The notes under the pieces: model-generated | The model's input: only the letters and a program-made list of their open reading frames with translations | Databases searched by the model: none | What the model was told of the DNA's origin: nothing | Shown here: positions 5,586 to 52,300 of the stretch, in pieces | How the letters are laid out: each line of letters opens with the position of its first letter | Position numbering within the stretch: position 1 is the stretch's first letter | Position numbers and translations under genes: made by a program | Source: Blastocystis sp. Blastoise | Taxonomy: Eukaryota > Protista > Bigyra: Opalinata | Length of the DNA stretch: 64,000 bases | Assembly (NCBI GenBank): GCA_039096225.1 | Contig: JBBPEB010000013.1 | Location: 1,116,001 to 1,180,000, forward strand | Direction: 5' to 3'

Positions 5586-5964
5586 AAAGAAGAAAATAAT
5601 TATCCTTTTAGTTGTAATGATTATACTATATAATAATATTACTAATGATTTTGTTTTAACTATTTGATCAATTAAACTACATACATTGATTTTAACAAAA
5701 CTATATATATATTCAATTATTTAGGTTATAGAAAATAGTAACAAAATAAGGAGATTAATATAGAAACAAAATATTTAGAAATAAGGTTAATAAGAAAAAA
5801 AAATAATTTCTAAACATAATATAATAATCTATAGAATCACCTTGATGTATATAGAGCAGATATAGAATATATATTTTCCCCCAAGAATATGTTCAAAAAG
5901 TAATTATATATAAAAGAAATAAAGAATATATGTATATAGATATATGTATATATATAAGAATAGT

Positions 5965-6295
5965 TTAATGTTCAATAATAGCAACAGTATGATCTCCACC
6001 GCAAACAACTTGTTTTATCTTCTTATTCTGTAAATACTATAGAAGAACGAGATAAAATTAGATATAGAATTCATGGTATAGGTTATGGGATATATATATA
6101 TGTTTAGATATATATATTTATAGATAGTAATTTATATTATAGAGTTATGGGATATATATATATGTTTATATATATATGTATATATATTTCAACAGGTGTA
6201 GGGTCTACTCTATAAGCAGCGATACTTTCTACTTTATCACCTCTACCTAATTGACCATGACGACCTCTACCAAAAGATATATACATATATATATA

Positions 6296-6348
<53 letters not shown>

Positions 6349-8453
6349 GTTATAATAGAATATATTAAAAATATAATATTATTATTAATAGTATATACAA
6401 TTATGATATAATATATATATACAGTATAGAGTGTACCATGTTCATCGACAACAGCAGAATGACCACCTCCAGCAGCAATTTGAGTGATTTTAATATCTTT
6501 TAATTGTTCAATCGCTTTAGGAGAATTGGTATCATTACATTTAGCATTACAAGTCTGACCATTATTACCTCTACCCCAAGCATATACTTCATTCTTATCT
6601 ATATAGACATAGACAGATAGACAGATAATCATATATATAGTTGTATATACAATAATAACAATAATAACAATAATAACAATAATAACAATAATAACAATAA
6701 TATATATATATACTAGAGAGAGCAAGACAATGATATTCACCAGAAACAATTTTAACCATGGGAATATTACGAATGGACTTGATCTTAGTAGGCTTCTCTA
6801 TATACCGAGCACCAGATCCATGACCTAATTGACCATAATCATCACTACCCCTATATATACATATAATATATTTATAGCATATATAACATATTTATAATAT
6901 ATTTATAACATATATATATATAACATATATATATAACATATATATAATATATAACATATATAAATAATACATTTATATAATATATAACATATATATATCC
7001 CAAGTATAGACTTCTCCCTTATCCGTAAGACACATAGAGCTTTCGAGACCACAGGAAATATCTTGTATACGACTACCTTCTAAACCTTCGACTTTCACAG
7101 CCTTATTATATACACCCGTACCAGTTACACCTATATATATATATATAGATATATAGAAATAATAAATAATAAAACATTAATATATATAATGATCAATTCT
7201 TATTTAGAATACTAATAATAAAACATTAATATATATAGAAATAATAAATATTAAAACATTAATTAATATTTATAAAATTATTAATTCTTGAATAGAATAT
7301 TAATAATAATATTATATATATATATATATACCAAGACATCTTTGTTTATTATTACCCCAAGCATAAACTTCTCCCTTTTCTGTTAATGCTAAAGTATGTT
7401 GATTTCCTACAGACACTTTTACCTATATATAATAAACATAATAATATAATAAATTCTATATATATATATATATACAATTTTTTCATTTTCTAATCCAGCA
7501 ACTTTACCAGGACAACCAGGTTCATTATTACTATATATAGATATATATAGATATATATATAATAATCATTATAGAATAAACGAAAATAATATATATACAT
7601 TACTATATATATTATAAATAATAAAAAAAATAATTGAAATGATAAATTATACACTAAAAAGATAATAATATATATATATACGGTTGACCTAATCTTCCCA
7701 TGCTAGCTCTTCCCCATGAATAAACGGCTCCATCTTCAGTAACAGCAGCACAATGATTCACGCCTATAGCGACATCAATAACCTTCTTATCATCAAATTC
7801 ATCTTCAATCTATTTAGTTAATGTATAGTATATAGCATAACTTATAAATCAGAGTCATGATAATTACAAAATTAATTATATATATTAAAATTAAAATAAT
7901 TACAGAATTCATAAATATATATTAAAAATAAAATAAAAATATAGATATATACAGCACGAGGAATAGATTCATTAGGAGATGCAGAAGTAATACCATGTCC
8001 TAATTGATCATTTTCACCTTGTCCAAAAGTCCAAAGAGAACCATCAGCAGTAATTACAGCAGTAGCTAAAAAGAAAAAATAACAATAGAAATTATATTTG
8101 AAAAAGTATAATAACTAGCAAATAAAATACAACATACTATTACCGCCAGCAGCAACAAAAGTACATTCTTCTTCTTCTAATTCATCAATTCTACGAGGTA
8201 AGATTTCATCACTAACGCCTCCGTGACCAAGTTGACCAAATTGACCAAAACCCCATGAAAAAACAGAATCTTTAGATTTTTCATTGGCAAATATGTTTTG
8301 TTTAAGAACATAAGCAGCACCAACACTAGATAAGCCAACAGCTAATCCTAATCCAATAGTTTTCTTAGCAGAAACTTGAGCAGCTCTTGTAGAAAAAGAA
8401 GCTACGAGAGGTAATTTGTTGAAAACAGCCTTTCGAATAGCTGAACAAAACAT
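5965..8453 (-). CDS. RCC1-repeat protein with a mitochondrial-type presequence (RCC1L-like), multi-exon
   Basis: Repeated VFSWGxGxxGQLG and AGGxHS units across exons; basic, Ala/Ser-rich N-terminus; ends VVCGGDHTVAIIEH* with the stop at 5965-5967. Confidence 0.85.
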
Positions 8454-22700: not shown

Positions 22701-23960
22701 CTTTATTAAGAGCGTTAATAATATTGTTGGTGTTCTATTAGAATTCCCATCTTCTCAGAATGAGTTATATTTCACAATGGATGCTACTTATTCTTATGGT
22801 CAATGTAATCCATTATTTATGGAAGCCATAATTACTAGTTCTGAAACATCTCCTGAATATCCTATTTATAATATGTTTGATAATAGTTTATTAACATATA
22901 CTGTATTCCCTCTAGCAAATAAACATATTATTAATTTAGATTTCTCAACTACTGGAGGATTATTATTTAATTCTATATATATACAACCAGGAGATAAAGA
23001 CTTACCTATATATATACAAGTACTTGCTAAAGAACGTCAGTCTTTTGATTGGATAGAAATAGTTCCTCGAGTATATATATATATATATATATATATAATT
23101 ATTATGGATATCTTATTTTTATTTTCAATTATTTAGTTAGTATACATGATTACTTCATATAGTTATTAATGATATCTATTTATTTTTGTTGTTCTTTATT
23201 CTTCTTTTTCTTATTTATTATTTATATAGACTTATCTCAAAATCATGCCAATGAATCCGATAACACTTTCTGTTCCCATGGGAATTGCTCGATATGATTA
23301 TATACAAATCTTATTTACCGCGGAAGACTCTGAGAAGCCCTCAAAGCCATTCTCTCTTCTTCTTCCTATTTTTTCGTTTACTTATTGTAATTATGAAGGA
23401 CTTTTGTGTTCTGAAGATGACGCATTTCCTCCAATGGGAGAGAATATGTACAGTTATAAAGTGTGCGGCGACGGATATCAAGGATATTTATACAGATTCT
23501 GTGACGGGCTACGTTTAGGAACAATTAAAACGGAACACTGTTCATTACTGTTACCTTATGGATTACGTTATCCTCAACAAGAATACTATTTCAGTACATA
23601 TTCCGAAATTAATGATATTGTTCCTAGTTATCATAATATCATTCAACTCTTCTCTATTACTCCATGTATATATATAAATAGTTTTCTATAAATAAACACA
23701 TTTTTTTTAATTCATATAAACATCTCCTTATTACTTATTATATATAACTTCTATAGCTCTTCCTACAGGTCTTTTCTTCAATACGTCTACTGGTATAATC
23801 ACGGGAATGCCTATTAGTCTTATTCCTAAAACTACGTTTATTATCACGGGAAAGAATGAAAAAGGAGTTACAAATACTACTGTTTCCCTTTGGGTTGTTT
23901 CTGGTGTTTGTACTCAGTACATGGAATTCCCTCAAACTATCATTGGTGAACGTTATTCAG
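16914..23960 (+). CDS. Large type-I surface protein, 5' part (signal peptide, repeated galactose-binding-like and putative Ig modules); interrupted by the transposon
   Basis: MKKILLLLSLIC signal; recurring W..FDDS.W / FNDADW / FDFSQW segments and LPxGLxxNxxTGIITGxP Ig-like motifs; the frame reaches RYS at the TSD. Confidence 0.8.
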
Positions 23961-25223
23961 CAGGGTGTGCCAAAACTGCGCTTTAAGCGCAAAGTGCGCT
24001 TTTCGATGTTGTTTTTGCGCTTAAATCTTTTATTTCATTTTTCTTTTAATTTTTATAAATCTACATAGAATAAAACGTTTAATAATTTTTAGAGGATCGA
24101 GATAAGCTCAATAATGATGTTTTTGACATTTTACACGAGGTTTGTGTTTGTTGATGTAATTTGATTTGTTGTTGAATAAATAATAACCTTACACATATTA
24201 TAATTAGAGAGCAAATTGAATTTTTTAGCATTTTTAGAATGTTAATCATGTAGTTATAATGATTGATTGTCTTTAAGTATTTAACAATTAGGAAAAAAGC
24301 GTGATTATGTGTAGATCTTAATAATATAGTAGTAGTAGAATCATAATAGCAATACATGCTTCAAATTTTTACAAAACTTTGAATTCTTTTAAATTGGCTA
24401 AATACTGATTATTAGTGGTCAAAAAATTTTCAAACTCAGCTCATCAAGACGCATTAATTTACACACTTTTCATGAAAAAAAGACCGGGTGACATAAAAAA
24501 GTAATTCATTAATTGACTATTATACTATGACATGACAGTTTTTAACTTAAAACATATTATTTTGATATATAATGTATAAATGTTTTGAAATAAGTCATCT
24601 AAGAAGATTTTTGTGACACATGTTGTGACAGATACATGACTTAAAAGTTCATAAGTCATCAAATAACAACAAGTATGATTCCTATATTTGACTATTTGTG
24701 TTAATTTGGGTGACAAATAAAAATTATTTTGTGACAAAAGTCAATTGCTTAAGATATTCTTTTGTATATTATTTTAAAGACTTTTATTTATGTTTATAAT
24801 GAAAAATAATGTCAATAAATACTAAAAAATATTATAAAAAATAATAATGTAATTAAAAAGTTTTTATTTTTATAAAATATCATGAAGTAGTCTTGTAGGG
24901 ACTGTACAGATACATCCTGACAAGTAATAAAAATTAAATAAACGAAAAGCATATTAAAATATTATTTTTCAAAAATCAAACAAAAAACAATACAATGAAC
25001 AAAAGCTGGATTTGAAAAAACAATACGTCCAACAAAATGATTTTTAATAGCCTTATAAAATGGTTTTAAAATGTATTTTATATGTAGAATAAGTCACACA
25101 ACACATTTATAATATTTATATTATAAAATATATTGTTTTTATGTTTAAAAATAAAAAAATAAAAAAACGGTTAGTAGTCACTAGCTTTGCAATTATTATA
25201 TGACTTGATGAAAAATATTATAA

Positions 25224-25305
25224 GGGAGTTGTTTGGTCAAATGGTCAGTGCGTATAAAATTTTTACATAGTGGACGGATCGAATCTTACGAGGAACTATT
25301 TTTTT
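25224..25305 (+). ncRNA. Degenerate tRNA-derived / Pol III-like element
   Basis: A-box-like TGGTCAAATGG, B-box-like GGATCGAATC at tRNA-like spacing, followed by oligo-T; stems pair poorly. Confidence 0.4.
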
Positions 25306-25589
25306 AAACTTTTTCTTTTGACTGCTATTTACAATGATTTTATTTAAAATCAACTTTGTTTCATTTTTATTATCTGTAAACATTATTTACATCATTGATA
25401 TCTGCTTTTTAGTTTAGAATCAACATATCAACAAACTTTTTTTTCAAAAAATAGTAATTATTGTTTAAAAACAATTCTAAGTATTTCTAGAATGTTATAA
25501 ATGTAATAAAAGAGCATAAATATAATATTTGAAGATATCAAATAATTTTAAACTTATTATATAGAACACATGAAAAAATAAAATTGAGA

Positions 25590-25668
25590 AATCGGTTGGT
25601 ATAGTTGACCAGCGCTGTAGCTATTATGGTAATTGTCGCTGGATCGAATCTCGCAAGAGGCATTTTTA
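25590..25668 (+). ncRNA. Degenerate tRNA-derived / Pol III-like element (second)
   Basis: TGGTATAGTTGA A-box-like, GCTGGATCGAATC B-box-like, then TTTTT. Confidence 0.4.
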
Positions 25669-26211
25669 TTTTTATTTCTTGGAAAAACATCTTTTTATGA
25701 AACTTGTTCTTTTATATATTTATTTTGATTATCTCTTGATACGATCATTTATTTTGGTTTAATTTAATTAACTTAGTTTATCAAGAGTATTCGCCTTGAG
25801 TATTTATTTTAATTTTTATAATCTGCTTTACTTAATTACTTTCTTTCTTTAGGTATCAAGGCTTTTAGCTTTTAAACAACTCTTTATACTGTGAAATCAG
25901 GATCTATAGCATTCCAGATGGTTCAAATGGATCAACAAATATTTTTTGTATATAATTCGTTTCTTCATTTGTAATATTTATTTGATTTATCTTTATTTTA
26001 TAGTGCAGGATGATCAGTATTTTTCAAGAGTATTTATTGTGCGTTATCTATAAGGTTTATTTAGTATTTATATTAATTATATTATAATTGCTTTTTATCA
26101 TTATTATTTCATTGATTTATTTGTATATTAGTTTATTATAGTGATCGTTATTTTCTTATTTATATTTAAAAGGAATATTATTTCATTTTTGATAACAAAT
26201 TATATATATAG

Positions 26212-32750
<6,539 letters not shown>

Positions 32751-35700
32751 CTGATATATATATATATATATGTATATATTTTTTATTGTTATTTTATTAT
32801 TCTTTCATATATATATATACATATTAAATGAAACTGGGTTGAATATAGGTATCAAGAAGTACCTAAATGTGATTAAAAAGTTGAATAGTTTCTTTTCTTC
32901 TGTCTTTTGTATATTAATGCTTAAAGTAATTATTTCATTGCTTCGTTTAGTTTGAATATGTTTGATGGCTTATATCAAATAAATGATAGCTTTATTTGCT
33001 CATTTATAAAGACATTTTTTTGTATTTAGGTTAACTTTGTCAAAAATATTATGATTTATGGCCATGTATACAAATAAGGTGAAAAGCCTTTCATTCAGTC
33101 TGATGACAAAACTCATGAGTATCATATTTTGTTACAAAAAACTTCCTTATGTGTTTGATAAATTCAGCAGAATTAAGCATGGCTGAAAAAGTGTCACAAA
33201 ATTTGGTGGCAAGTGTCACCAAAGTCAGGAAAGGACTGACTATTTGATTATTTTTAAAACTTCAGTCATTCTTTAAAAATTTCAATGATAATTTCATTCT
33301 TTTGTTAAAGATTCAAATCAGAATAAGATTATTGCCTATAATATTTTTTCAAACTTGCTTTCTATCTGCTTTCTGAACTAATAATGGTTTATCATTAAGA
33401 TTCATATTGGTTTTTGTTGCATTGTGAACTCCTCTTAAATACTAGTCAATATCTACTACATGATGATTTCCCATTGTTTGTTGATTGCTTTGTTACGTAC
33501 TTGCTCGTTATGATCAGTGTTCAATACACATATCTTACAATGTGCTACGTGATGGATACTTATCAGTTACTTATTCTTGGAATGATTACTTGCAATGTAT
33601 AATTTTATGAATATTTACAGTTTGTTGCCTTCCATTTATTATTTACATCTGATTTGGTTACTCACCAAACTTCCTTACTTCTCTTCTTGAATTAGTATAC
33701 TCATTTTTCTTTTTGTAACTTTGCGATTAATGAGATCTTTATTTATGTTGTTTGTATGTTTGATTTTATTCGACTAATGTGCTTTTGATTGCTTGTTCTA
33801 CTTTATAAGTGCTAATTATTTTGTTTTTGTTTTTTATTTTTCTGATACTTCCTTTTTTCATACTGTATTATAATGGTATTTATATATAACGATGACATTT
33901 TCTTATAGATTTACTTATTATGAATTTTCTTATTCTTATTCTAGTATTTAATAAATACTTAAACACTTCATCTCTGCGATTAATACTTACTATGGTTACT
34001 AACATACATAAGTTTCTACTGAAGATAGTAGCAGATTAGTAACAATTGATGTTTATTTCTTTTCATCCTTAAATCCTTTTGTCTATATTACAATATTATC
34101 ATGTACTCTTATTCTATCAAGTTTACTATTATAAGTTTTTGAATGTTTTAGTATCTTATTGTGTAATTCTTTAATATGCTATTATACAGGAAAGTATCTA
34201 TATGATATTTCTTTGTTGTAGTTTTCTGTATAAAATTTTTGAATTTCTTTTTATTCTTTGTATATATTTTCATCTTGGTTAATTATTCTTCAACTTCTCT
34301 TCATGTTATCGTTAGTCTACTATTATATATTGAATTTTTAGTTATAAACCTTATCTTATTTCCTTATCTTATTTCATCTTTTGTTCTTTTAAGGTATTAT
34401 AGCATTACATTAATTGTATTAGTTTTCTGGTTTTTCAGTCTCTTCCTATCTTCTTCGTATGGTATCTTTATATTTATTAGACTCTTCATTTCTTCTGGTG
34501 CTTTTCAATTATTATGTGATCATTCGTAATACTTCACCTGCATGTTCTTTTCCCTTTATTAAAGAGTTTCTAGATGTGCTATTTTTATATTACTTTTATA
34601 TTATCCTTAGTTGATATTCCTTTTTCTCCTATGATAGAATTCTTTATGTTCTTATGTTATTCTAATAGTCGTTTCATATTTCTCTATTAAACATACTATG
34701 AGATTTAATGACGATTTTCTTTTCCTTTAATAATTACAAATTCCTCACTATTATATATTATTATATATCTTAGTTTTATTATTCTAACAGATTTATTTTT
34801 ATATTTGTTTCTATAATTGAAAACATACTCAATTAATTTATTTTCATATTTCATTCAAATATACTCTTCATATACATATTCATATCCTTCATTTATGGTT
34901 TTCTTCGTTTTCTCATGTTCTATATATTATCCCATGGTCTACTTATTTTTGTGCCTATTTTTAATCCTATACTTCCTCATTATCTCTATTTCTTTATCCA
35001 CTTTTCTTTTATTTCTAGTGCTTCTATTGTGTATATTGTGTGCTCATTATTAGACTTATTCATTTTAATACTGCTTCATCATTATCTCTCTTCATATTCT
35101 TTAATGCTCATGTTTATTGTATTTCCTATTTACACAGTTATTATTTCAGAAGCATTTTCCATTTCTTGTCTAAATAATATGGGTTTGAATATTTTTATTA
35201 GTCCTATTTCTTACTATCGTTTTTTATAATTCTTCTCGTTCGTTTCCTTTCTTTTTCTTTCCAACAATTTCTCTCTTGGCACTACTCATCATGGATTTTA
35301 GTAATCAAAGTTAGGATTTGTTCTCATTGTTGTATTACTATTATCTATATACCACAAAAGATATTTTTATTATTTCTCTTCATTCTAAGGTTTTGCTCTT
35401 TTTGTTACTTAAACATATTTATATGGCTACTCTTATTTATTATTATTGTGTACATTCTCTTCTTCTTATTTAATTTTTTATAAAAGCCTAGTATCTACAC
35501 CTTCTATTCCTTCTATTCTTTCTCATTTCTAATTACTCTCATTTTCCAAAAATGATATAATTATATAATAGGATCTATGTCTCCATATTTCTTTCGTACT
35601 GTTATTTAATAAAATACTATCTCTATTTACTTTAAACCATTTCAACTCCCTTTAACTTATTATCTATATACATCTTACATTCATGCTGATATGAATACTA

Positions 35701-35775
35701 TAATACTATTTGTATTTCTTCTATTTTGTTGAATACGGTTGAGGTAGTTCTCGAATTGTTTATTTTCTAAATTTA

Positions 35776-35822
35776 CTAGGGTCACGCCGCAGGTCCGGGG
35801 CCTAACGGCACCGGACCGCGGC
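35776..35822 (-). mobile_element. Helitron-like 3' terminus (GC hairpin plus CTAG|T)
   Basis: Hairpin of about 15 bp at 35786-35822, 6-nt spacer, then CTAG followed by T on the minus strand; 5' end not fixed. Confidence 0.65.
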
Positions 35823-35990
35823 TGCAATGAATAATAACTGTTTGGTTTTTATTTACTTTCTTTCCTTTTTATCTATTATATATTATATATTATATATTAT
35901 ATAATATATATTATTTATTAAATATTATCTATAATATGTTACTTATTATATATTATATATTATATATTATATATATTATTTTAATAACAC

Positions 35991-36060
35991 TTCTTATACT
36001 CTATATGGAGAGTAGCAATCATTTATTGATTGTAATCAGGTTCAATTCCTGATATAAGAA
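35991..36060 (+). ncRNA. tRNA-like cloverleaf element, copy 1
   Basis: TTCTTATA/TATAAGAA closing stem, CTCT/AGAG arm, GCAATC/GATTGT arm, canonical T-arm TCAGG-TTCAATT-CCTGA. Confidence 0.6.
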
Positions 36061-36329
36061 CTAAATAGATTATTTGAATAGTATCTGAAAAACTAAAAAC
36101 AATACTTGAAGAAAATAAGAAATCCTTTTTGAATCATTATATTTGTTATTTATTATTTTAAAAATATATTTTGTATTTATAAATAGTTGAGTTACTGCTT
36201 TAATTATTATGGAGTTTCTAAAGCTAATAAATTTAGAAATGGGTCATAATGTTAAGTATTGAAAAATATTTTTATGTTGTAAAATCATTTTAAATAGATT
36301 ATAATAAAATAGCATAAACTTATTTTAAT

Positions 36330-37310
36330 CATTTCATAAAACTAAAACAAATCTAACACAACAAAGTCAACATTCATTTTGACTTTAACAACTTAAACAC
36401 AAAGTTTTTGAATTAATATTAATAAATTCAATCTAAATAGCATTTCTAAACACAAAAGTGTCAACAATATTACTTTTAGAGAGACTTTACCATTTCGATA
36501 TCAAGTGTATCAAAATAGTTTTAGACATAACTTTCACATAGTATAGATCTCATTATTTTATTTATTAATTCAAGTTTAATGTCTTGAATCTCTGACTTCA
36601 AGATCATTTTTAACACATTTTGAAAGGTTGACACACTTATAATTAATTTTAAAAGCTAATATTATAACATTATACTCATCATAACTCTATCAACATAAGA
36701 GTCACCATTTTGACACTCTTTATAAACATTTTACATTTGGTCATACACTTTGTCAAGTGTATTTTTGTCCTTTCTTTTGATATAATTTAGAATATAATTC
36801 ATAGTTTGATAAATAAAATATTTTATATTGAATCTCATCCTTTGGATAATTCATTTCTACATTTAAAAATATTAATCCCTTTAAACTTGTTTTTAAAAGT
36901 CAAAATTTTCATAGTCTAATGAAAACACAATTTTAAAAGAATATACTAACTCTTTAAAATTTCTAGACAACTCAAACACATTGTTAATTCACTTTTCAAA
37001 AATGAAATTCTCTTATTTTTTAATATGTTGTAGAATTTAGCTTATTATATATTAAACTTCTATTAGAATTTCGAATCTCCTATTTTAAGATAATATTTTT
37101 TATTTTACAACCTTAAAGTTACTTTTATGAGTTAATACGTTCACAAAATTATGTAAATATAAATGCGAGTAAACAGAGAAACTCAAAACTTAAATATCTC
37201 AATTATTGACAGTTTTAAATCAGTAATACTATACAGTGTTAAAAGTGACAATAAATGTTTTAAAATTTAATTCAAATATTTAAAAACTTGACACTATTTA
37301 ACATACTAAG
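36330..37310. repeat. Diverged internal repeat block A (related to 40470-41660)
   Basis: Shared segments such as TTGGTCATACACTTTG (about 36737 and 41492) and GAATCTC...ACATTT (about 36830, 41096, 41585). Confidence 0.65.
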
Positions 37311-37681
37311 TATTTCAAGAATTATCTTAATAGTCGACACAATTTAAATAAAAAAAAAAAAGAAAAAGAACAAAACAAAAATAGCAAAAGAAAACATTTA
37401 AATATAGAATAGCTAAAACGATAACAACAGCATAAATAAATAAATAATATAAAGAAAGCAGATAATAGAAAGCTATTAAATGTGAAAAATAATAATAATA
37501 ATAAGCAAAAGAAAAAGAAAAAGAACTAAAAAAAAAAAAATCTAAACATAACCATAACACTAAGAGAAACTATATAGATAAAAGATATATATATATAATA
37601 AGAGATAGTATAATAAATATATCTAACATATATATATTAAAAGAAATATTATAAATATTTGTTATATATATATATATATAC

Positions 37682-38832
37682 CTTTAGATACATTTTTATT
37701 ATTAAAATGAAAGCTAACATTAGGGTGATAAGATCCCCTATTAGAAAAGACACCTATATATAATATAATAAATGATAAAATATATATAAACAATAAATAT
37801 ATATATATACCTTCTAAAGAAGGAACAGAGGAATCACCATGATATCTTAACTGACTTGAAGAACCTATATATAATGAAAAGATAATTAATAAATCAAAAA
37901 AAAAAGAAAGGAAGAAATAAGAATATACCTGTATCATTATTACTATTAATCCAAGACTCCATAAGAAAAGAACGACCTATATAAGATAAAAATAATAATA
38001 AACTAAATTAAATTTAAAAAGTAGACAACCTTCATCATTAATACGTTCAGCAACTACAACCACAACAGTAGAATAACCTATAAAGAAACAGTAATAGACA
38101 AATAATAAATAAAAAAAAAATAATAATAAATGAATGACAATATATATATACCTTTAATATCATATGAGCAGTCTACCTGATCACCAACAACATCAACAGC
38201 AACATTTACATCAATAAAACAAACCTATATATATAAAAGTAAAAAAAAAAATAAATGAATGACAACATACCTTCAACACCACACAGACATCTATTATCAA
38301 CATCACTGTTAACATGTACAACAACTGAAGAACCTATATATATATAGAAATAATAAAAAAATAATAATAAAATATAAAAAAAAAATAAATGATTGGTAAC
38401 ATACCATCTATAAAGCAAGAAGAACCTACATCAACACCGATATCACTATTGGAATCACTTACAATAACAGAAGAACCTATAAATAAAGAAAAGTTAAAAA
38501 AATAAAAACAAATCATTGACAACATACCTTCACAGTTAGCATAACAGGCAACACCACCACCACTGCATAATTCAAATAGCATAGAAGAACCTAAAATAAT
38601 ATAATAAATAATTAAAAAAAAAAAGAAATGGAAAAATATATACCTTAAAGACCATCATAGCAAGTACCACCAAGACCAAGAGCATACACAACTGGATTTT
38701 ATTGAGTAGAAGAACCTAAATATGAATACTAATAACAAATAGATACAATATACCTGATTTTCTTTGAAATATAAATTATTTTTTATTTCCAGACCTCCAC
38801 CTTGAAGCAATTTTGTTGTTCTTAGACATCAT
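37682..38832 (-). pseudogene. Micro-exon gene: 10 short exons joined by phase-1 introns; decayed
   Basis: Internal exons of 72,63,72,63,73,48,48,54,72 nt, all AG|GT...G|GT; three in-frame TAA and one frameshifted exon. Confidence 0.6.
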
Positions 38833-39604
38833 AATTAATAATTTAATATATAAATGAGTATTAGATTATGTATTTAACAATCCTATTTCATTTGAATTAA
38901 TAAATATAATAGGGTCTATTTTTAAAATATGCTTCTTAAAACATAATAGAAATCAAAAATAGCCTTAATTTTTCATTGATTTTATTACAAAAGTAATAAT
39001 TGGGTCATTCTGGTTTAAAATCATTTTGGGTACCCAAAAAACATAGTTCTTTACTCTTTTTTAAATATTTTATTGTATTGATTGACTTAGTGTGTTTTAT
39101 TTATTTATTTAAAGTTATTTAACTTAGTATTATATTTATCTATTTATATACTAATTTATTTATTTAAAATAATACACTTCTTTATAGGATTCTCTTGTAT
39201 TTGCCTTGGTTGTCATGGTTAGTGGTTCTTGAAGTGGTCCTGGTTAAATGAAATGGTTTATTTAGTGTCAGGTATATAAATATATATATTTTTTATAATA
39301 TTTCATTTTTAATTCATTTGTTTCTTTAATTGTTTCTTTTTTTATTATCTTTTTGGTTTATATTTTCTTTATATATAATTAATCAATAGATTATTAGTTA
39401 TTTTTATTCTATAGGGAAGAAAATGTAACTGATGTGTGTGTTATACTCTTCGTTTTTTCATGTCTTTCTTTTAAATCTGTGGTTTCAGGTTGATTTATAT
39501 GTATATATTTATATTTTATTTATTATTTTTGTTATTTATTGTTTCTTTATTTATTTATATTTTATTTATTAAATTTATTTTATTTATTTATTTATTTATT
39601 TATT

Positions 39605-39643
<39 letters not shown>

Positions 39644-39789
39644 TTATATTTATTATATTTATATGTTTATTTATTTATTATTATTTATTTATTTTATATG
39701 TTTATTTATTTATTTTTAATATTTATTTATGTATTTATTAATTATTTATATTATCTTTTTTATATGTTTTCTATTTTATATAGGTTTAA

Positions 39790-40162
39790 AATCTTCTTAT
39801 TCTTTTTTTTCTTCTTTCTTCTTCCTTCTTACTTCTTTCTCATTCTTTCTACTTCCTATTTCCTTCTTCATTCCTTCTTCCTTCTTCCTATTTCCTTCTC
39901 CATTCATGCTTCCTTCTTCCTATTTCATTCTTCATTCATGCTTCCTACTTCCTACTTCCTTCTTCCTTCTTCCTCATCTTTGATTCTTCTTACTTACTTC
40001 TTCTTCATTCTGGATTCTTCCTTCTTCCTCATCCTTCCTTATTCTTACTTCTTCTTACTTCCTTCTTTCTCATCCTTCTTCCTCATCCTTCCTTATTCTT
40101 ACTTCTTCTTCCTAATCCTTCCTACTTCCTTCTTCCTCATCCTTCCACTTCATTTCCTTCTT
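39790..40162. repeat. Pyrimidine-rich (CTT/CTTC) low-complexity tract
   Basis: Almost purely C/T on the plus strand, with repeated TCCTTCTTCCTCATCCTTCC. Confidence 0.8.
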
Positions 40163-40215
40163 ATTATATATATATATATATATATATTTGATTATTATTA
40201 TTATTTATAAACTCC

Positions 40216-40281
40216 TTTTATGCTCTAGAAGGAGAGAAACAATCATATAGATTGTTTTCAGGTTCAATTCCTGACATAAAG
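40216..40281 (+). ncRNA. tRNA-like cloverleaf element, copy 2
   Basis: Same four stems with a compensatory change in the closing stem (TTATG/CATAA); followed by oligo-T. Confidence 0.6.
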
Positions 40282-40314
40282 TGTTATTTTTTTATTTTTT
40301 AATATTTTATTCAC

Positions 40315-40389
<75 letters not shown>

Positions 40390-40469
40390 TCTTTTTTTAA
40401 TTTATTTTAATCCAGTTTAATTTATACTTTTCAATTTTGACCTTATATATATATATCTAACTTTTTATA

Positions 40470-41660
40470 GTTTTTTTAGACTTCCTCTTCTCAACAACAG
40501 TCACAATGAGAACAAATCTATTTATACTCAAACAAATAAATTATCTCTAAACTGTTTGAATCAATCAATATAGACGTGTCTGACATAATTTATCAATTTA
40601 AACTCAATTTTAATAATTAAAAGTAAACAAACCAAACACACATGTCGACTTTAAAACGTTAAACTCAGTATTAAAAGATAGTTTTTATAGAGTGGACATA
40701 AAACATTGATTTAAACAAAAATGAATTAAAATAATTAACTCTTGACACAACTTTACCATTTGACAAAACACTCATCCACAATATTTTCCAAAGTTCTTTT
40801 AGTAAAGTGTTTATATACACATATTATGTATAAAATGAAAGTCAACTTCTTGAATCTCTTTGTTTAAGACAGTGTTTAAAACATTTTGACAAATTAACAA
40901 CCTTTAACTTGCTATTTAAAGCTGATATTTTAAGAGTAAACTTGATTTAACTACTTAAACACAACTGTCATCATCATAACACTTTTAAAGACACTTTACC
41001 ATTTGCTAATACACTTTGATCAAAATATTTTTGTCCCTTCTTTTAATATAATATAGGTCATACACTCTAGTTTAATGACTAAAAGCTCTTATTTTGAATC
41101 TCGTCCTCTAAGTCACTCATTTTTACATTTTCTAAAAATTAAGACCCTTAGAGTTGACTTTTTGGCTCAGTTTTTTTACAGTGCACGAAATTCACGATTT
41201 TGTATAAACTGAAGTAAAAATAAATTTTAAATAATAGTCACAACCCTTCACACATCAACTCTTTAAAAATTATTTTCTTTGTACTTTTGATATGTTGTAG
41301 AGCTACTATAGCTGCACACTAATTAATATCTCTAAATTTTTTATTCAAAGTTTAAGACTATGTTTTACACATTTATTTAAATTTGACAACCTTAAACTAT
41401 TTATTTAAAGCTCTTATTCATAAAATAGACTTAATACATGATTCTAAACATATATAGAAACCCTTTTACTTTTTAAGACACATTTTGTCATTTGGTCATA
41501 CACTTTGACCATCATAATTTTGACTCTCCTTTTAACATAGTATAGAGTTATAAGTCTAGTTTACTAAATAAAAGTCATTATATTGAATCTCTCACTCTAA
41601 GACCACTTAATTCACATTTTTCAAAATTGTGACACTCAAACTCATTATTTTAAGACTTTG
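40470..41660. repeat. Diverged internal repeat block B
   Basis: Homologous to block A and internally duplicated. Confidence 0.65.
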
Positions 41661-43732
41661 TTTTAACTATAGTAGTTTGAGGACCTATTGATTACTATGA
41701 TACAATATTAGTCAATTATAAGAAGATCGAAGAAAATATCGATCACTCAAAAATCGTCCTCAGGAGCTCAAAATCGCTACACCTAGGTTTTTTGACCTCC
41801 TGAATCAGAATATCATGTCAAAATAAGAATCTAAATTTGACCGTTAAGGCCTCACGTGTTCAATATGAAAAAGTATTAAAAAATAGATAAATATAAAGAA
41901 TAAACACGGATAACGTATATTGTGGGATTGATAAAAAATCAAGTTTACCCCATGTTTATTTTTCAATTGTCTGGTCAACAATTTTTATCGGGATGATCCC
42001 AAAGAGCCAATCAAAAACGACTCAAAAATCATGTTTTCTGTTCTTTTATTAATAACTTTTTAATTATAAATAATATCGCTTAACCAAATATACGGTGCAC
42101 AACTACATGTTATATCCTATTGAACTGTGTTTCAACGAAAAGTTAACTCCCCGTAAGTTTAGAGGAGTTGCGGCGACAAACTATAGTATACATTAGCCAA
42201 TCAAATGGTTTTTCCAAAAACTGACCAATGGGAATTTTTTTGCCTATTCTCATATATATAGTAATGATTTTCATTTCTATTACTTTAGATATTATATCTT
42301 CTTAAGTGCATATGTACATAATTAATATGCTTATATATATTTACACCTGCTTTTTCCGTTATCAGCCGTTACTTCATATTATTTATACAATGTCTAACTA
42401 TTATATACAATTTACTCCGTTTGTTCTTTTACTCATGATGATATAATATAGAAATCAACTTCTTATTACTTCTTATGGTTTATTTATTGTATTTCTATTT
42501 ATAGATTTATATATATTTTTATACGAATATTGTTCTCTCTTCATGTTATTGTCTTTAAAAATATACTAAAAATAATTATTATCGTCTCTTCTACTCATTT
42601 ATCACTGCCGATTATAAATTCAGTTGATATATGCATTCTTCCTTCTTCTTAACTTCAAATTTTATTTACAAGTTTTTAGTTATCTTCTTTATGATCTACA
42701 TATATAAATATATTCTCATTAAGTCTATGTCAATCTTTCCAATAATTTTTCTTCTGATAATCTTTCAAATGCTAACCTTTATATAATATCATGAATCTTA
42801 ATCTAATACTTATTTCATGCTATTATAATATAAAATCCACATTACTTTCTATTATATCATATATTCTAATACTCTTTCGGATATATATAATCCCTCATAT
42901 GATACTTAATATAGATATAACACATCTTGCTCTTTCCTTTTGAATTCATGTATAAATATAAAATTGTTGGTGTAAACGATTTAAGATTCCACTTTATATA
43001 TATGTTTTGGAAAATAGTATATTCTTTAGGAACCAATTGTTATCACTCTCTTTGTGATATTTGATTGATAAGTCAGGTAAATGATTTTAGTAGTTATTTG
43101 GTTCTTTCTATTGATACATTATGATTGAAAATATATTTTGCTATTTATTTATATATTTAATCTTCTTGATTAGATATACTATTTGATTTAAGAAGAGTAT
43201 ACTTTATAGTTGTATATTATACTTTTGATTGAATAAAGATTCTTATTAGTATTGGATATTGTTTTAAAGTATTATACTAGAGAGATTAGTATATATGAAA
43301 TAATTACTTCTAAAATAATATTTATTTTTCATATAAGTAATAATATTTCTCAGTTATTCGTTTGATCTGAATATAATAGTACTTGAAAAAGAATATAATT
43401 AGAAAAATAATTGAAATATAGATAAAAATTATTAAGGAATAGTGATTCTAATTAAGAAACTATATACTATTGATATAATCAAATATATAAAGGAATATTC
43501 AATGTCATCTATTTATAATTATATTTAAAAGATAACAGTATATCTTCTTGAGTTAATTAAAACAATACAAATTATAATGTAACAATAAAACATTATGGAA
43601 TACAAATAGTTAATATAATGAAAACAATATAAATATATAAATATTAATAGTAAAAGAAATCAATGTACTTTGTAGTATAAATACAGTAATTAAGTAGTTG
43701 GATTAGATTAGTGATTTTGTTGCTAGATGTTA

Positions 43733-46466
43733 TCAATCGAGTTTCTTTTTCTTTAATTTATCTATATATAATTAAGAATAGATTCTATATTATGTGAATT
43801 ATGAATATAATACTTATAATATACATACGCTCTAAAACAGTAGTTATAAGTGATGAAGAATCAATGATATCAGAAGTTAATCCAATTGTCATTTGGGTTG
43901 TTGGATTAATAGTGTTTCTGTATTTGTTTTTTATATACACGAGATGACTGAAACCGCTCTCACAGAGATATGAAGTTGCAAAGGGAAGAAAACATTTCTT
44001 GGCTATATCATATAATAATGGAAAACGACTCTTATGGCTTATATAGAACTCATCTATTGGTACGTTATTAAATTCTTCTCTACATGTTTTATCAGCAAGT
44101 AAACAGAAATACTCTTCTTTAACATGAAACTCCATTTTATTTTCGTCAGCTACTTTTGAAAATGGATTAGTAATCCAATATAAAGAATGATCAATAAGAT
44201 TAGTTGTTGGTGTATTTTTTGGTTTTTTTATGTTACTATTCGTTTTCTTCTGCTTTTTATTCTTTTGTACTTCTCCTTGATTTGTATTATTACTTATTTC
44301 ATTTGGAATGATTGCCCCAAGAGTTATTATACAATTGATATTAGCCTGAATTATATTTATATTACTAATGATTCCATTGTATTGTCCTTGAATACTACTA
44401 TTAGGGAAATTATTAAGAACACCAGAAATACTACCTAAAGTGTATCCATATACTAAATATGGAAAGTCAATTCTAATCGTTACTTGAGTTTCTATTAATT
44501 GCTGAGTAACTATGTCAACATAGGTTATTAAGCCATTTACAACTCCATTTGGAGATACGCAACCTTGTAATGATCCAAGAATATTAAATTGGTTTGATAC
44601 TACTGATGTATTGTTATTAACATTACTATTCACTTCATGAGATATATTTGATGTATTATGTGTATTTTCTTGGTCTATTAAATATTCATTAAGGTCTTGA
44701 AGATACGATTCATCACTACCAATATAATTTAGTATTTCTGGGAAATAATTCAGTAAATTACGTCGAAGAGTTATTAGATGATTTTTGATATAAAATATGA
44801 TTGAATTAATATCAAGCTTGGTTGTAGATACATAATCCTTAAGTTTCGTAAATGATGAATAATCGTTATTATTTATTAGTCTTTCTAATCTCAACGATAA
44901 TTTTATAAATAAATCCTTCATAATGTCTATTAACCCAAATATATATCTATGCTGTCCTTGCATTGATTTATTACAATCATAGAATAAACTGGTAACATCC
45001 TCAAGGTATAACATTGAAGCTATGAAGTTAGTATCAATAATGGTGTTATATAAGTCCTTCTTTTCTTTATCCTTTTTTATTACTAGTGTTATTCCATTTC
45101 TAAGTAAATTAAATCTTTTAATTGATGAATGGCATGAAAGCCATCTTGTAGGGCAATAAAGGAGAAGTTTATAACTTCTAATATTTTTTTCCTTTTTTTC
45201 TTCCTTCTTATCATTACTATAAACTTCATGAATATTATTATCTATATTATTATCTGTATCAGATGTATCTAAAAGGGATTCAACTACTTTATTATATTCT
45301 ATCTCTAAAGAAGATATATTATTAGGGGAATCAGGTATGTTATCTTGAGGAGAGAAGATAGAAGAGGTTAATGAATATTCATTATCAATATTGTAATTAT
45401 TGGATTCGTCTTGTCTAACAGCAGACTTCTTTATATATGAAATTATCTCAACAGCACTTTTGAATATATTAGTGAAGTATTTTGGTAAACAGTTTACACA
45501 GAGTTCTTCTCTATGAAGAAAACAGTGGATGAACATACAATTCTTATTCTTCTCTAGTACTCGTGTTTTGAAGGAGTTTTTGTCTCCATTCATATTCGAA
45601 GCACCGTCAAAAGTAGCTGATACGCAATTATTCCACAGAAGGTTATTATTATTAAAGAAATTATCTACCATGTTAAATATATTATCACCTGTTTTGGAAC
45701 TAATCTGAAAAATACTTAAAAATGATTCAGTAAACTTTTTATTATATTCGTATCTAGCATAAACGAGTAAATAGGATTTCATTTCTATGTCAGTTGACTC
45801 GTCAAGCTGAATAGAAAATGATCCTGATTGTCTTATCCTATTTATTACTTCTTGTTGAATTGTCAAAGCAATTTCATCACTTTTTCTTTTGATACTGCTT
45901 GAGGATAACGGAAGATTAGAAAGGACTTTGACATTCTTTAACCTTTCATATTCTTCAATAATAGGTTTAACTAATTTTTCTCCAGTTCTGTAGCTGTATC
46001 CATTCTTTGAAATGGAGTAGGCGATGAAATATGAAAGCTTACTGGATAAATCTGAAAAGCTAAAGAGAGAATTTGAGTATTCTGTGTTTTCATTATGATC
46101 TTTTAAGAGTTCTTGAATGTCATCATATGTGTATTTGCTTAACCCATGTTTATTCTTGAAATGAGTGAAGAGTTTTGAGGCTTCATAACCTTTACACGTG
46201 AGAGTAGACTCACAGATTAAACAAAAATAGGAGTTTTTTGTTAATTTTTTAAATCCATAAACAACTGGATTGGCATTATATCTTTTAACTCCTTCTTTTA
46301 CTTCACTATAATATTTGGATTTAGGATTAATATCTGGTTTATTATTCGTTTCTTCTGTAATTATGTCATCATCTTTTTTTTTTCGTCTGTTGTAGACTTG
46401 TCAATCTATATATATATATATATATTACTATTAATATACTTGTAATTTTTTAAAGTACTGTTCCAT
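43733..46466 (-). CDS. hAT transposase, Buster/Charlie (SCAND3/ZBED5-like) type
   Basis: BED-like CLIC...HFKNKH, FSIQLDESTD, TFDGASNM, HCFLH, TRWLS, PFATSYLCESGFS. Short first exon 46440-46466 and last exon HKLKKKKLD* are inferred. Apparent 1-nt frameshift in the A10 run at 46374-46383. Confidence 0.92.
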
Positions 46467-46669
46467 GTATTTAAACAATAAAAAAAGTTTATCTAATATA
46501 GAATGTTCTTTTTGGTTTAGCAAAACATTTTCCCTTATATTTTTGTTTTTCCCGTGTTTTCATCACTTAAAATAACTATGAAAATCACGGTAATAAAAAA
46601 GTAACTTTGTTATTTAAGCGCAAAAATTTTGGTCCTTTCGCTTAACGAGTAACTACGTGGTGACCCCTG

Positions 46670-47081
46670 TTATTCAGGTCAATGCAAACGAGGAAATATA
46701 GGTCATATTTTATATCAATGTACAGTGAATAAAGATACAAATTCTATTGACTGGGTAGTTGTTGAAGAAAGTTGTACGAGTATCTTATTAATATCCACAA
46801 TTGTTATTGCTGTTACTCTATTGGTTGGTATTATTGTTCTTCTTTATGTTTTTAGAACAGTAGAAAAGAAAAGATTGTATATAGAATATTATTTAATTTA
46901 TTATTATTTTAATAGTATTTATGGTTGATTATCTGTGTTATTTTATTTATCATAATTATAAGATCTATTAGTTTATAATTACAAATATATATATAGGGAT
47001 ACAATTCAGGCATTAAAGAAAAAAGCTGGTGGCATTGATTATACAAATAATTATGATAGTGGTGCTCCAATTGTTATTTAA
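46670..47081 (+). CDS. 3' part of the same surface protein (Cys segment, TM helix, short cytosolic tail)
   Basis: Removing the element plus one TSD copy restores the frame (ERYS-GQCKRGNIGHILYQC ... TM ... KKRL); one intron, then last exon 46997-47081. Confidence 0.85.
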
Positions 47082-48610: not shown

Positions 48611-49329
48611 ATGGCTACAGATACTGTTAGTATTAAAACTGTATGGTTAAGAGAACTATATTATTTTATGATTCATATATAGGGAGACTTTGAATGGACT
48701 GCTGATGACTTAGGTTGTCCAGGACCACAAAACAAAGAAGCTTTGTTTGATTGGCAAAAGGATTACAATGGCGTTAATGCATTAGAGCGCTTCGGAGGCA
48801 TTGCCGGATTGGTCAAATCATTAAAAACAGACACGGAAAAGGTGAGTTGTTGATTGTCAAGTAAATTTGTTTAGGGTCTTACAACCGAACAAGCCGAGGA
48901 TGAGGAGCGTCTGCAAACGTATGGGAGCAATTACCAGCCACCCAAGAAGTCCAAGAACTATATGCAATTGGTTCTTGAAGAATTCAAAGAATTAACAATG
49001 ATTATTCTTACTATTGCTGGTGTTGTGTCTCTTGCTTTGGGTATCGCGACTGACCCAGAAGGAACAGGTATGATTATAAATAAATACAACTTGGAGTTAA
49101 TAAATAAATATATTTCTTTTATAGGTTGGATTGAAGGATTCTCTATTATTCTTGCCGTACTTATTTGTGTAAACGTTGGTGCTGTTAACAATTATCAAAA
49201 AGAAAAACAATTCCAACAGTTAAATGAAGCTAATGAAAGAGAATTTGTTAAAGTATATATATATTGACTTTATAATATATATAAAGTTGATATTTTATAA
49301 ATAATAATAATAAAAATCATAATAATAAT

Positions 49330-49367
<38 letters not shown>

Positions 49368-52300
49368 TATATATAATATAATATATAGGTGACTCGTGAT
49401 GGTAAGATCGTTGAGATTTTGATATATGATATAGTAGTAGGTGATATAGTTCATATAAATCAGGGTGATAGTATACCATGTGATGGTATATTTATAGCGG
49501 GTAATAAGTTGTCTATAAATGAGAGTAAGTTAACAGGAGAGAGTGATAATGTGATAAAGAATGAGAAAGATCCATTTTTGATATCTTCAACAGAATGTTT
49601 TGAAGGTAGTTGTATAATGTTAGTAACATCAGTAGGAAAGAATAGTGTATTTGGTCGTATGAAATTATTAATAGAAGGTCAAGGTGAAGAACAAACGCCA
49701 CTTCAATTAAAATTAGAAGATTTAACTAAATTTTTATCTACTATTGGTTTAGTAACATGTGGTGTTACTTTATTAGGTATGCTTATTATATATGGTGTAA
49801 GGTATGTAAGATAGAATATATAATAATAATAATAATAAATATATATAAATATATATATATAGATTAGGAAATGAATATGCTGATAAAGAATTTGAATGGA
49901 CAGCAAAGATTGCAAGTGATATATTAGAAATAGTTATTACAGCTGTATCAATGTTAGTTTTAGCTATTCCTGAAGGTTTACCTCTTGCTGTTACTCTTGC
50001 TCTTGCTTATTCTGTTAAACAAATGATGAAAGATAATAATTTAGTATATAAATATAATAAAAATAATAATAATATAATATATAATAAATATAAATATACT
50101 ATAGGTTCGTCATTTAAGTGCTTGTGAAACAATGGGTGGAGCTACAGCTATTTGTAGTGATAAGACAGGTACATTAACTCAAGGTAAGATGAGTGTAGTT
50201 CAAATATGTGAAATGGATAATATAAATAAGAATTTTCATTATTTAAATGAGAATAAAAGTGGAGAAAAAGAAGAATATGAAGAATTTTTAAATAAATGTA
50301 AGAATTTAGATATAAAATATAAAGAAAAGTTATTAGAATGTTGTATATTAAATAATGATGGTTTTTTAAGTAAAGATGAAGAAGGTGAGATAAAAGGAGT
50401 AGGAAGTCCTTTGGATATAGCTTTAATTCATTGGTGTAATCGTTTAGGTATGAATTATGAAGATATTCGTAAGATGTATCCAAATATGGAAGTAATGAAA
50501 GAAGAAGATCGTAATAGAATAGAGAAAGGTGTGATACGTCATTTTGCTTTTCATAGTAATCGTAAGAGATGTTCTTGTTTAGTTAAATATGATAATAATC
50601 ATTATCGTTTATATGTAAAAGGTGCTCCTGAGATTTTATTAAGATTAAGTGATTATGTAGTAGATAATAAAGATATGTTAACTGAATTAACAGGTGAATT
50701 TGAAGAATGTTCTAATGGAAGTATATTAGGTAATGGAAATCGTCGTGAAATAATGAAAGAGAGTGTATATCCAATGGCTACAAATGCTCTTCGTACATTA
50801 GCTATTGCTTATCGTGATTTTGAGAATATAGAAGATTGGGATGAAATGGTTGAATATGAAGATAAGATGAATATAGGTGTAGGTAAATGTCCAAAGATTG
50901 AAAGTCATTTAATATTATTAGGATTTTTAGGTTTTCAAGATCCTGTTCGTCATGAAGTATATATTATATATTATATTATATATTATATATTATATTATTT
51001 ATTATATAATAATATATAAATAAATAATAATAATATATAATAATAATATATAAATAATAATAATTCTTTATAGGTTCCTCATTCTGTAAGTGTTTGTAAT
51101 CATGCTGGTATTCGTGTTCGTATGGTTACTGGTGATAATGTAGCTACTGCTAAAGTAATTGCTCGTCAATGTAATATATATCATGATAAGCCATGGACTG
51201 ATTCTTATGGTATTACTCATTCTAGTGGTATTTGTTTAATGGGTTCTCAATTCCGAGAAATGGCTGGTGGTTTAGTATTACCTGCTCATTTTTATCATGA
51301 ATGTCATTGTAAAGATTGTTCTGAAGAAGATAATTATATAGAGAATTATATAGTATATAGAGGTCAAGAAAAGACTCCTTATCCAAGTATAATTGGTCAT
51401 AAAATATCTGAATGTGATATTTGGACTCCTGAACGAAAAGCTATGGGTAGAAGTGGTTGTACTAGTGAATGTAAAGAACGTGGTTGTATGTATAGTTGTA
51501 AAGATGCTTATGATGATCGTGAAATAGAGAAATATAAGATTGTTCGTAATCAAGGTAAATTTGATGAGATAATAGATACTTTAGATGTAATGGCTCGTGC
51601 TGCTCCTTCTGATAAACAGATTTTAGTAAGTGGATTAATGGAAAGAGATGAAGTAGTAGCTGTTACTGGTGATGGTACTAATGATGGTCCTGCTTTAGCT
51701 AAATCTAGTGTTGGTTTTGCAATGGGTATTGGTGGTACTTCTGTTGCTAAAGAAGCTTCTGATATTATATTAATGGATGATAATTTTTCTTCAATTGTAA
51801 AAGCTTGTATGTGGGGTAGAAATATATATGAAAATATTCGTAAATTTTTACAATTTCAATTAGTAGTTAGTTATGTAGCTGTATTTTTTGCTTTTATTGC
51901 TTCTATGTGGAAAGGAGAAAGTCCTATTCGTGCTGTTCAAATTTTATGGGTTAATTTAGCTATGGATACTATGGCTGGTTTAGCTTTTACTACAGAGAAA
52001 CCAAATGAGAAATTATTAAAGAAGAAACCTTATGGTAAACGTGAAAGTATTATTGCTCCTATAATGTGGCGTAATATATCTGTATCTGTTGTATATAATA
52101 TAATAATATTATTATTAATTCTTGGTTTTGGTGAAGAATGGTTTGAATTAGAAGGACCTAAAAATGATGGAATTAATGAAAATGGAAATACTTTATATAC
52201 TTTTATTTTCCATGTATTTGTATTATTACATGTATTTAATGAATTAAATTCTCGTTGTATTAATAATGAAAGAAATATATTTACTAATTTTAAAAATGCT

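Follow-up and report, generated by a model that had tools for sequence, protein, structure and literature searches.

A recently amplified, probably autonomous hAT transposon with an entrapped second element and a nested Helitron in Blastocystis sp. Blastoise

Transposons of the hAT superfamily are recognised by a target-site duplication (TSD) of 8 bp, terminal inverted repeats (TIRs) of 5-27 bp that start with CAG or TAG, and a DDE transposase with a C-terminal dimerisation domain and CxxH and RW motifs. Here we describe a giant hAT at positions 23961-46669 of a 64-kb stretch of the genome of Blastocystis sp. Blastoise (the window, G000:C16:1116001-1180000), which an earlier note made from the letters of the sequence had read as a gene-capturing element that moved as one 22.7-kb unit. 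We find that this interval is very probably a copy of a recently amplified autonomous hAT, in which a second hAT-type element (X') is entrapped and to which a Helitron was later added. Classical autonomous hATs such as Ac, hobo, Hermes and Tol2 share with it the DDE and hAT dimerisation domains, short TIRs, subterminal motifs, 8-bp TSDs and derivatives that are MITEs (miniature inverted-repeat transposable elements), but the giant exceeds their cited lengths by a factor of two to four, these being typically ~5 kb, with the 7.1 kb of Gulliver as an upper example (PMC6710886).

Host sequence has been found inside other hATs, in particular the transduplicating elements of Dothideomycete fungi. 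The histone-H3 hAT of Pseudocercospora fijiensis is ~9.5 kb long, has 8-bp TSDs and is present in 133 full-length copies, and the H3-hAT of Pyrenophora tritici-repentis is present in 26 (PMC6710886, PMC3538342). Like these, the Blastoise family has 8-bp TSDs, holds host gene sequence inside its termini, and has been amplified to tens of copies together with its transposase. However, the 9.5 kb of the P. fijiensis element stands against 16.2 kb for the giant (22.7 kb with the Helitron), the cargo of the giant is not a captured transcript but an intron-containing piece of genomic DNA within an entrapped second hAT, and the copies of the giant are essentially identical, show no repeat-induced point mutation (RIP), and reside in a stramenopile gut protist. 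ToxhAT, a 14-kb element of fungal wheat pathogens, is likewise large, belongs to class II, contains cargo as well as nested transposons, and was once called a hAT; it has a 2-bp TA TSD and 74-bp TIRs, and we dropped it as a large-hAT precedent after its reassignment to Tc1/Mariner under the name ToxTA (PMC12506042).

The Blastocystis genome paper that names the Blastoise strain describes eight assemblies, among them that of the tortoise-gut form Rus-B, here equated with Blastoise (host, Russian tortoise; 33.3 Mb in 33 contigs; 23.1% GC), and gives transposon contents of 5.6-7.5% for the tortoise genomes as bulk percentages only, with neither hAT nor Helitron mentioned (PMC10690189). The giant family is larger than the hATs named in the cited literature, yet it works like an ordinary hAT, and its nesting and MITE partners are ordinary as well; each ingredient (hAT, transduplication, nesting, MITE partner) is already known.

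Ends, insertion site and copies of the giant hAT

In the window, the element extends from 23961 (CAGGGTG...) to 46669 (...ACCCCTG), a length of 22,709 bp. Its boundaries and the exon that it interrupts are as follows.

23953-23960: left TSD, TTATTCAG, with the identical 8-mer at 46670-46677
23961-24420, plus strand: left end of the hAT, with the CAGGG terminus, subterminal GCGCTTWA motifs and a 15-mer at 24012-24026
46467-46669, minus strand: right end of the hAT, with the 15-mer at 46612-46626 and the terminal CCCTG
46670-46677: right TSD, TTATTCAG, matching the left 8-mer
23720-23960, plus strand: left part of the interrupted host exon, with a Pfam He_PIG Ig-like domain (E 2.8e-8)
46678-46925, plus strand: right part of the interrupted host exon, with a Cys-rich stretch, a transmembrane helix and a basic tail

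The exact TSD, the CAGGG/CCCTG ends and the 15-nt subterminal inverted repeat are present just as the earlier note had described them. The TIR is perfect over 5 bp and then matches at 7 of 11 positions. The 15-mer TTTTTGCGCTTAAAT occurs exactly twice in the window, where 0.02 occurrences would be expected by chance, and its two copies (plus strand on the left, minus strand on the right) are inverted and lie 52 and 44 nt from the left and right element ends, respectively. The core GCGCTTWA occurs four times in the window, every time within 65 bp of an element end. By TSD length, termini and transposase features, the element is a member of the hAT superfamily.

The claim that removal of the element restores a host reading frame also held. 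Excision in silico, leaving the flanks and one TSD copy, yields the He_PIG exon as an open frame of 163 codons (80 from the left, 82 from the right), and in the occupied state both host frames stop a few codons inside the element. We estimate the chance of 163 open codons at ~3e-7, with ~25% GC and ~9% of random codons being stops; therefore the insertion has split an exon of a He_PIG-domain surface or membrane protein gene, and the flanks have not decayed since.

Searching the 33.3-Mb, 34-contig assembly with the first 150 bp of the element returned 18 matches at 100% identity, and with the last 150 bp, 19 matches at 99-100%. These form 18 pairs of ends, each on the same contig and strand, with one extra right end (C22:56001) that has no left partner. 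The earlier note had proposed to collect paired ends with different TSDs by a genome-wide search, and 16 of the 18 pairs have perfect and mutually different 8-bp duplications. The remaining two are an 18.4-kb variant at C31:218719-237103, with its TSD offset by 3 nt (TCT), a ~2-kb deletion and a ~4-kb additional insert, and a copy at C16:443718-459931 that is flanked by the unrelated 8-mers GAACTGAG and CAATCCAC and is probably a recombinant of two hAT copies. The ends are 16,212-16,222 bp apart in 14 of the 18 pairs and 16,099, 16,152, 18,385 and 22,709 bp apart in the others, the last being the window copy. The standard mobile unit of the family is ~16.2 kb, not 22.7 kb, so that a real hAT far larger than usual does exist, at a smaller size than first proposed. 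No short autonomous copy was found in the genome, a further difference from the classical hATs, and each right end with a transposase gene sits in a unit of at least 16 kb.

The interiors were compared end to end for the window copy and a canonical copy (L050+L051, C33:553266-569885), and by segment searches and end loci for the other 16 paired copies. Four internal query segments, 7.9 kb in sum, are found at ~100% identity and at the expected offsets in all 18 paired copies, as is a match to the host gene UTP20. Mean pairwise substitution divergence among copies is 0.015% in the left 1.5 kb and 0.06% in the right 1.5 kb, and the bulk of the differences in these terminal segments are homopolymer lengths. 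Taken together, ~100% identical interiors, distinct TSDs and a divergence of at most 0.06% show repeated and very recent transposition of the whole unit of at least 16 kb. The unit consists of a ~7.4-kb core hAT and the 8.8-kb X', and the core comprises the GCGCTTWA-bearing ends, a 3.9-kb non-coding interior and the gene for an 876-aa DDE transposase at the right end. In total, the family makes up about 0.9% of the genome.

In addition to these large copies, the genome holds a MITE family of 332-333 bp with at least 11 copies (L019-L029; for example L020:1501-1833), of which 10 of 11 examined have perfect 8-bp TSDs. The first 96 bp of the MITE are 85-86% identical to the giant hAT and the last 9 nt are shared, with the MITE ending in ...TGACCCCTG and the giant in ...GGTGACCCCTG. 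Judging from these shared ends, the MITE is probably moved by the transposase of the giant.

The nested Helitron and the 22.7-kb composite

The window copy is collinear with the canonical copy at 99.9% save for one insert, which accounts for its unusual length.

35776-42266, minus strand: non-autonomous Helitron nested in the hAT, 6,491 bp long, with an ambiguity of 1 nt in its boundary; missing from the canonical copy

The empty site in the canonical copy reads ...AAATTTA|TTTTCAT.... The insert lies on the minus strand, begins with 5'-TC and ends with CTAG-3', is placed between A and T without a TSD, and has a 12-bp GC-rich hairpin 10 nt before its 3' end (-19 kcal/mol, z -5.3). Three further full-length copies at ~100% identity occur at C11:24852, C22:60405 and C24:255344, and all four have A|TC...CTAG|T junctions. 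Helitrons in general have TC...CTRR ends, and the insert shares with them these ends, the hairpin 10 nt from the 3' end, the A/T insertion and the lack of a TSD; it is a non-autonomous Helitron that hit one hAT copy, an ordinary nested insertion with nothing unusual about it. The insert contains no long open reading frame (ORF), and none of the 51 listed PF14214 (Rep/helicase) matches falls inside it. Elsewhere in the genome there are at least 50 stop-free Helitron Rep/helicase frames of 1,500-1,640 codons (e.g. C4:1529821, C34:607239), and Helitrons look highly active in Blastoise; autonomous Helitrons at other loci could supply Rep for the insert.

A second, truncated hAT copy at C22:56001-67024 bears the Helitron at the identical nucleotide and in equal relative orientation. 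The distance from the Helitron to the solo right end is 4,404 bp, as in the window, and both junction sequences are identical, but the outer flank of the C22 copy, CCTACAAT, differs from that of the window copy. The C22 hAT copy ends 132 bp past the Helitron, where it is cut by a ~790-bp (CCCTGG)n array. Such GC-rich hexamer arrays are found in this 23%-GC genome at L061:283-1069 (C22:~67025-67815) and at C32:~749561-750013; we considered (CCCTGG)n as a telomere repeat, which its presence at two loci only does not support. Since independent Helitron insertions at one nucleotide are very unlikely, the hAT+Helitron composite of 22.7 kb has been duplicated at least once, through a 22.7-kb transposition or through repair-templated conversion.

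On the earlier reading, the window copy landed as one 22.7-kb unit, with the Helitron already inside; the family unit is 16.2 kb, and the reading is upheld only in part. We regard this mode of arrival as quite possible, if short of probable. Because C22 has the Helitron at an identical nucleotide and in matching relative orientation beside a different flank, the composite must have been received by one of these loci or by both. However, the Helitron is missing in the seventeen other copies and is thus a late addition, the 1.5-kb ends hold no private variants common to the window and C22 copies that would mark either locus as the parent, and the left TSD of the C22 copy is uncheckable because that copy is truncated. 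On the other hand, the Helitron may have passed from one hAT copy to another that was already in place, through ectopic gene conversion or through repair of a gap with another copy as template, without a 22.7-kb unit ever having transposed. Double-strand gaps left by hAT excision are repaired off homologous templates, copies at ~99.9% identity over 16 kb are ideal substrates for homologous repair, and the unmatched TSDs at C16:443718 suggest recombination between copies. We nevertheless consider this explanation rather unlikely, as it needs a conversion tract of more than 6.5 kb.

Whichever way the composite spread, the jump of cargo within the element is clear for most of its content and not for all: every one of the 18 paired copies has the internal segments within the TSD of that copy, and this content was aboard when the unit moved, but the 6,491-bp Helitron was added later. 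Cargo with its own later insertion boundaries, which the earlier note had named as counting against its reading, is seen for the Helitron, which is one part of the cargo only.

A 16.2-kb autonomous hAT with 19 near-identical copies, and with a 22.7-kb derivative found twice, extends the known natural cargo range of hATs. Tentatively, we suggest that it may even be the largest naturally active autonomous hAT described, in that all transposase-encoding copies are at least 16 kb, the 22.7-kb derivative would itself have moved, and the same ends would drive a 333-bp MITE. If this is true, a Buster-like transposase handles a 70-fold range of substrate sizes with little penalty, and would be a candidate large-cargo transposase as well as a current driver of gene disruption and sequence shuffling, which would be notable for a gut protist thought to have few active transposons.

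The transposase gene and its relatives

The transposase gene occupies the right end of the element.

43785-46466, minus strand: transposase gene, with an 829-codon open frame at 43785-46274 and the annotated ATG at 46466
Transposase motifs: LDESTD at 45789-45806; FDGASN at 45594-45611; HCFLH at 45513-45527; TRW at 45135-45149; CESGFS at 43947-43964

The 829-codon frame matches, at 100% identity, WA158_007455 (P0001), which is annotated in Blastocystis sp. Blastoise as a hypothetical protein and is 876 aa long. In an alignment with seven relatives (A1), D205, D270, E819, H297-C298..H301 (CxxH) and R424-W425 are invariant. The Pfam family PF05699 (Dimer_Tnp_hAT) is matched at 22.0-22.3 bits against a cut-off of 21.4, and the A1 profile matches the Hermes transposase (E 1.8e-6), while a search of PDB with the single transposase sequence came back blank.

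Buster elements, which include TcBuster, Mar and domesticates of the ZBED5/8/9 type (PMC3517528, PMC3499496), are defined by the target consensus nnnTAnnn (PMC3517528). Among named proteins, those closest to the transposase of the giant are ZBED5/7/8/9-like, with identities of only 26-31%. Its N-terminal region is of the DUF4371 type but scores 18.1 bits, under the cut-off of 32.1; the sister family P0002 scores 33.7. The terminal CAGGGG/T of the giant resembles the CAG(G/A)GGTAGGC of Mar. The target sites are different: the TSD consensus is nTnnnnAn, 12/16 TSDs having T at position 2 (p 0.003) and 11/16 having A at position 7 (p 0.014), and TA is at positions 4-5 in 2/16 TSDs, compared with 2.4 expected by chance. 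The giant also differs from Buster in a lineage-specific insert of ~150 aa before the C-terminal domain. The transposase looks Buster-like in sequence, as first proposed, but not in its target sites. The genome has two more hAT families (C2:16235, C23:490060, C33:278071 (P0002), C23:216877 and C28:34433) whose transposase frames are open and 36-40% identical to that of the giant; they have the same unusual ~150-aa insert.

The frame is open at 100% identity in 15 of the 19 genomic copies and broken in four. Near its start lies an A-run (46367-46387) that varies among copies, being A10 in the window, A11 most commonly (about half of the 19), A12 in four and A13 in one. The annotated model, with ATG 46466 and a 51-nt GT-AG intron, requires A12; with A11, a 34-nt intron restores the frame. 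Sequencing runs were compared as assembled contigs, which carry neither strand nor transcript starts. In X1, the one run that contains the sequence, a 3,083-nt contig with A11 covers 43588-46669 at a word depth of 226, while the equally repeated 42267-43193 reaches at most 9.5 and the unique flank 28. This contrast is hard to explain as DNA and suggests transcription of the transposase gene; the sequence is missing from two sister runs of that study. Another X1 contig, 46642-46881 (depth 28), takes in the final 28 nt of the element and continues into the host exon, and would be a chimeric or read-through transcript over the right junction if X1 is RNA.

Several observations weigh against an autonomous, recently amplified hAT with an entrapped X'. 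With regard to the family as a whole, full-length sequence was compared for two copies alone (the window copy and L050+L051), with the other 16 covered by segments, and the TSD is offset or unmatched in two copies (C31:218719, C16:443718). The left TSD of X' is missing, so that insertion followed by terminal loss, the order of events that we favour, would look identical to a composite that originated by recruiting its left end. With regard to the gene, the start of the transposase is uncertain, as an ATG is in frame only if an intron of 34 or 51 nt is removed; the window copy may be frame-shifted near its start, or may carry a homopolymer assembly error; no splice joint is seen in the X1 contigs; and X1 is labelled as RNA only as a guess.

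The gene-level points raise the alternative that the family is no longer autonomous: either its burst is over and no transposase is produced, or a different hAT family mobilised the copies in trans. The need for splicing to reach an in-frame ATG, the variable homopolymer, the missing splice joint and the presence of other hAT families with 36-40% identical transposases are all in keeping with it. We think it unlikely, however, as the 829-codon frame is kept at 100% identity in 15 of 19 copies with all catalytic residues present, the annotators' model is a complete 876-aa protein, the termini of the giant differ from those of the X family, and the gene region stands out by its depth in X1.

Cargo and the proposed order of events

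About 19 kb of other sequence lies between the left end and the transposase gene, as the earlier note had stated. Besides the Helitron, it contains the following.

24421-33238, plus strand: entrapped non-autonomous hAT of a second family (X'), lacking its first ~119 bp and left terminus and keeping its right terminus, ...GGAAAGGACTG
26302-27150, plus strand: UTP20 fragment, block 1, host 4068-4931 (reverse complement of L052+L053); blastn 87.7% identity, 8.8% substitutions
27151-29944: 2.8-kb repeat R3, which splits the UTP20 fragment and is absent from the host gene
29945-32803, plus strand: UTP20 fragment, blocks 2-3, host 5069-7982; 92-96% nucleotide identity; pseudogenised
33239-35775: non-coding interior of the core hAT, part 1; 100% in all 18 paired copies
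42267-43784: part 2 of the same non-coding interior, which takes in the sequence 3' of the transposase gene; 99.98% identical to the canonical copy

The origin of X' is visible from its relatives. Two stand-alone X copies (L062 802-9228 and L063) are 8.4 kb long and 98.8% identical to each other, have the termini CAGCGACTTCC...GGAAGGCACTG and perfect 8-bp TSDs (ATAAAAGG and ATTATAGT), and match the window at 24421-25673 and, with their last 82 bp, at 33161-33239. C15 holds an older stand-alone relative with 91.7% identity over window 24421-31705; it has the UTP20 left boundary at host 4068 and the 2.8-kb repeat too, and keeps the CAGCGACTTCC terminus, 119 bp upstream of the start of homology to the giant hAT. 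We also considered the 8.8-kb block as a Helitron and rejected this, because its stand-alone relatives end in CAG...CTG and have TSDs of 8 bp. A tRNA-like stretch (..GGATCGAATC..) lies at window 25584-25668, within the conserved 5' part of X'; over ~25590-25660, for the one strand and the bounds used, it gave no ARAGORN gene, no Rfam match and an unremarkable fold (z 0.1).

The host sequence in X' corresponds to host 4068-7982 of the UTP20 region in three collinear blocks with 8.8%, 2.0% and 3.2% substitutions, 3.9 kb in total. Two frames at 30779-32106 match Pfam UTP20_N (30779-31399: E 1.5e-23), and the parental gene on C34 matches it with 143.9 bits over model positions 3-363 in a 646-codon exon. 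In the element this exon is split into several frames, and the fragment stops inside the UTP20_N domain while the host gene extends further. As in transduplication, the parental gene is identifiable, and the fragment is found in every copy and in older X' relatives. The cargo is older than the insertion (2-9% from the host gene, compared with 0.015-0.06% among copies) and broken, in agreement with the earlier suggestion of a recent insertion with already decayed cargo. What did not hold up is the capture of a gene by the giant hAT itself, which is not demonstrated: the fragment lies within X', and the C15 relative, with the same UTP20 boundary and repeat, indicates that it belonged to a second, non-autonomous hAT-type element before joining the giant. 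In Blastoise, the family still breaks genes, here a surface-protein exon, and multiplies a piece of an essential ribosome-biogenesis gene.

The other parts of the cargo are less informative. R3 has relatives at 80-93% identity at no fewer than nine other loci, at least five of them outside X'-type composites, and its ends are undefinable because they lie in (TA)n and (AAT)n tracts. Pfam searches with ten other cargo ORFs matched nothing besides UTP20_N. Six-frame inspection of the remaining 3.9-kb interior revealed low-complexity frames only and no credible ORF. The sole other relative of this interior is a 71-73% relic at C15:593870-597974, beside a decayed transposase. This old, stop-riddled transposase relic has 68-72% aa identity to the transposase of the giant, and the locus is likely an ancestor-like core copy. 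We infer that the non-coding interior is old core hAT sequence.

A mechanism can be proposed from the arrangement of these parts. The transposase would bind the subterminal motifs, cut at the CAGGG ends and paste the whole interval with an 8-bp staggered cut, indifferent to the content between the ends, from the 333-bp MITE to 16-23 kb. With its left terminus missing, X' would no longer move by itself and would travel as locked cargo. In this way, cargo could be fixed when a second transposon lands inside the first and loses one end. The order of events may have been as follows: X' acquired the UTP20 fragment, at a time now 2-9% of divergence away; R3 was then added; next, X' inserted into the core hAT, where one of its ends was lost; the family amplified in a burst (at most 0.06% divergence); the Helitron inserted in one copy; and the 22.7-kb composite was duplicated to a second locus.

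One could also suppose that the UTP20 fragment is not junk but persists because it is functional, perhaps as a truncated protein or a regulatory RNA acting on host ribosome assembly. In places it is 95-99% identical to the host exon at the amino-acid level, and it has been multiplied about 19-fold. Nonetheless, it is an internal fragment ending within UTP20_N and is broken by the 2.8-kb repeat and by frame breaks, which makes such a role very improbable. Finally, although long near-identical repeats assemble poorly and most differences between copies are homopolymer lengths, an assembly artefact, whether a chimeric join brought about by repeats or a false multiplication of copies, can be dismissed with near certainty, given 18 loci with unique flanks, constant spacing and matching TSDs on both sides, independent X1 contigs across the right junctions of the window copy (46642-46881) and of two other copies, and the restored host exon, which speaks for a real insertion.

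The window also contains exons of a P-type ATPase-like gene (motif CSDKTGTLT) at 48962-51019, downstream of the surface-protein gene that the element interrupts.

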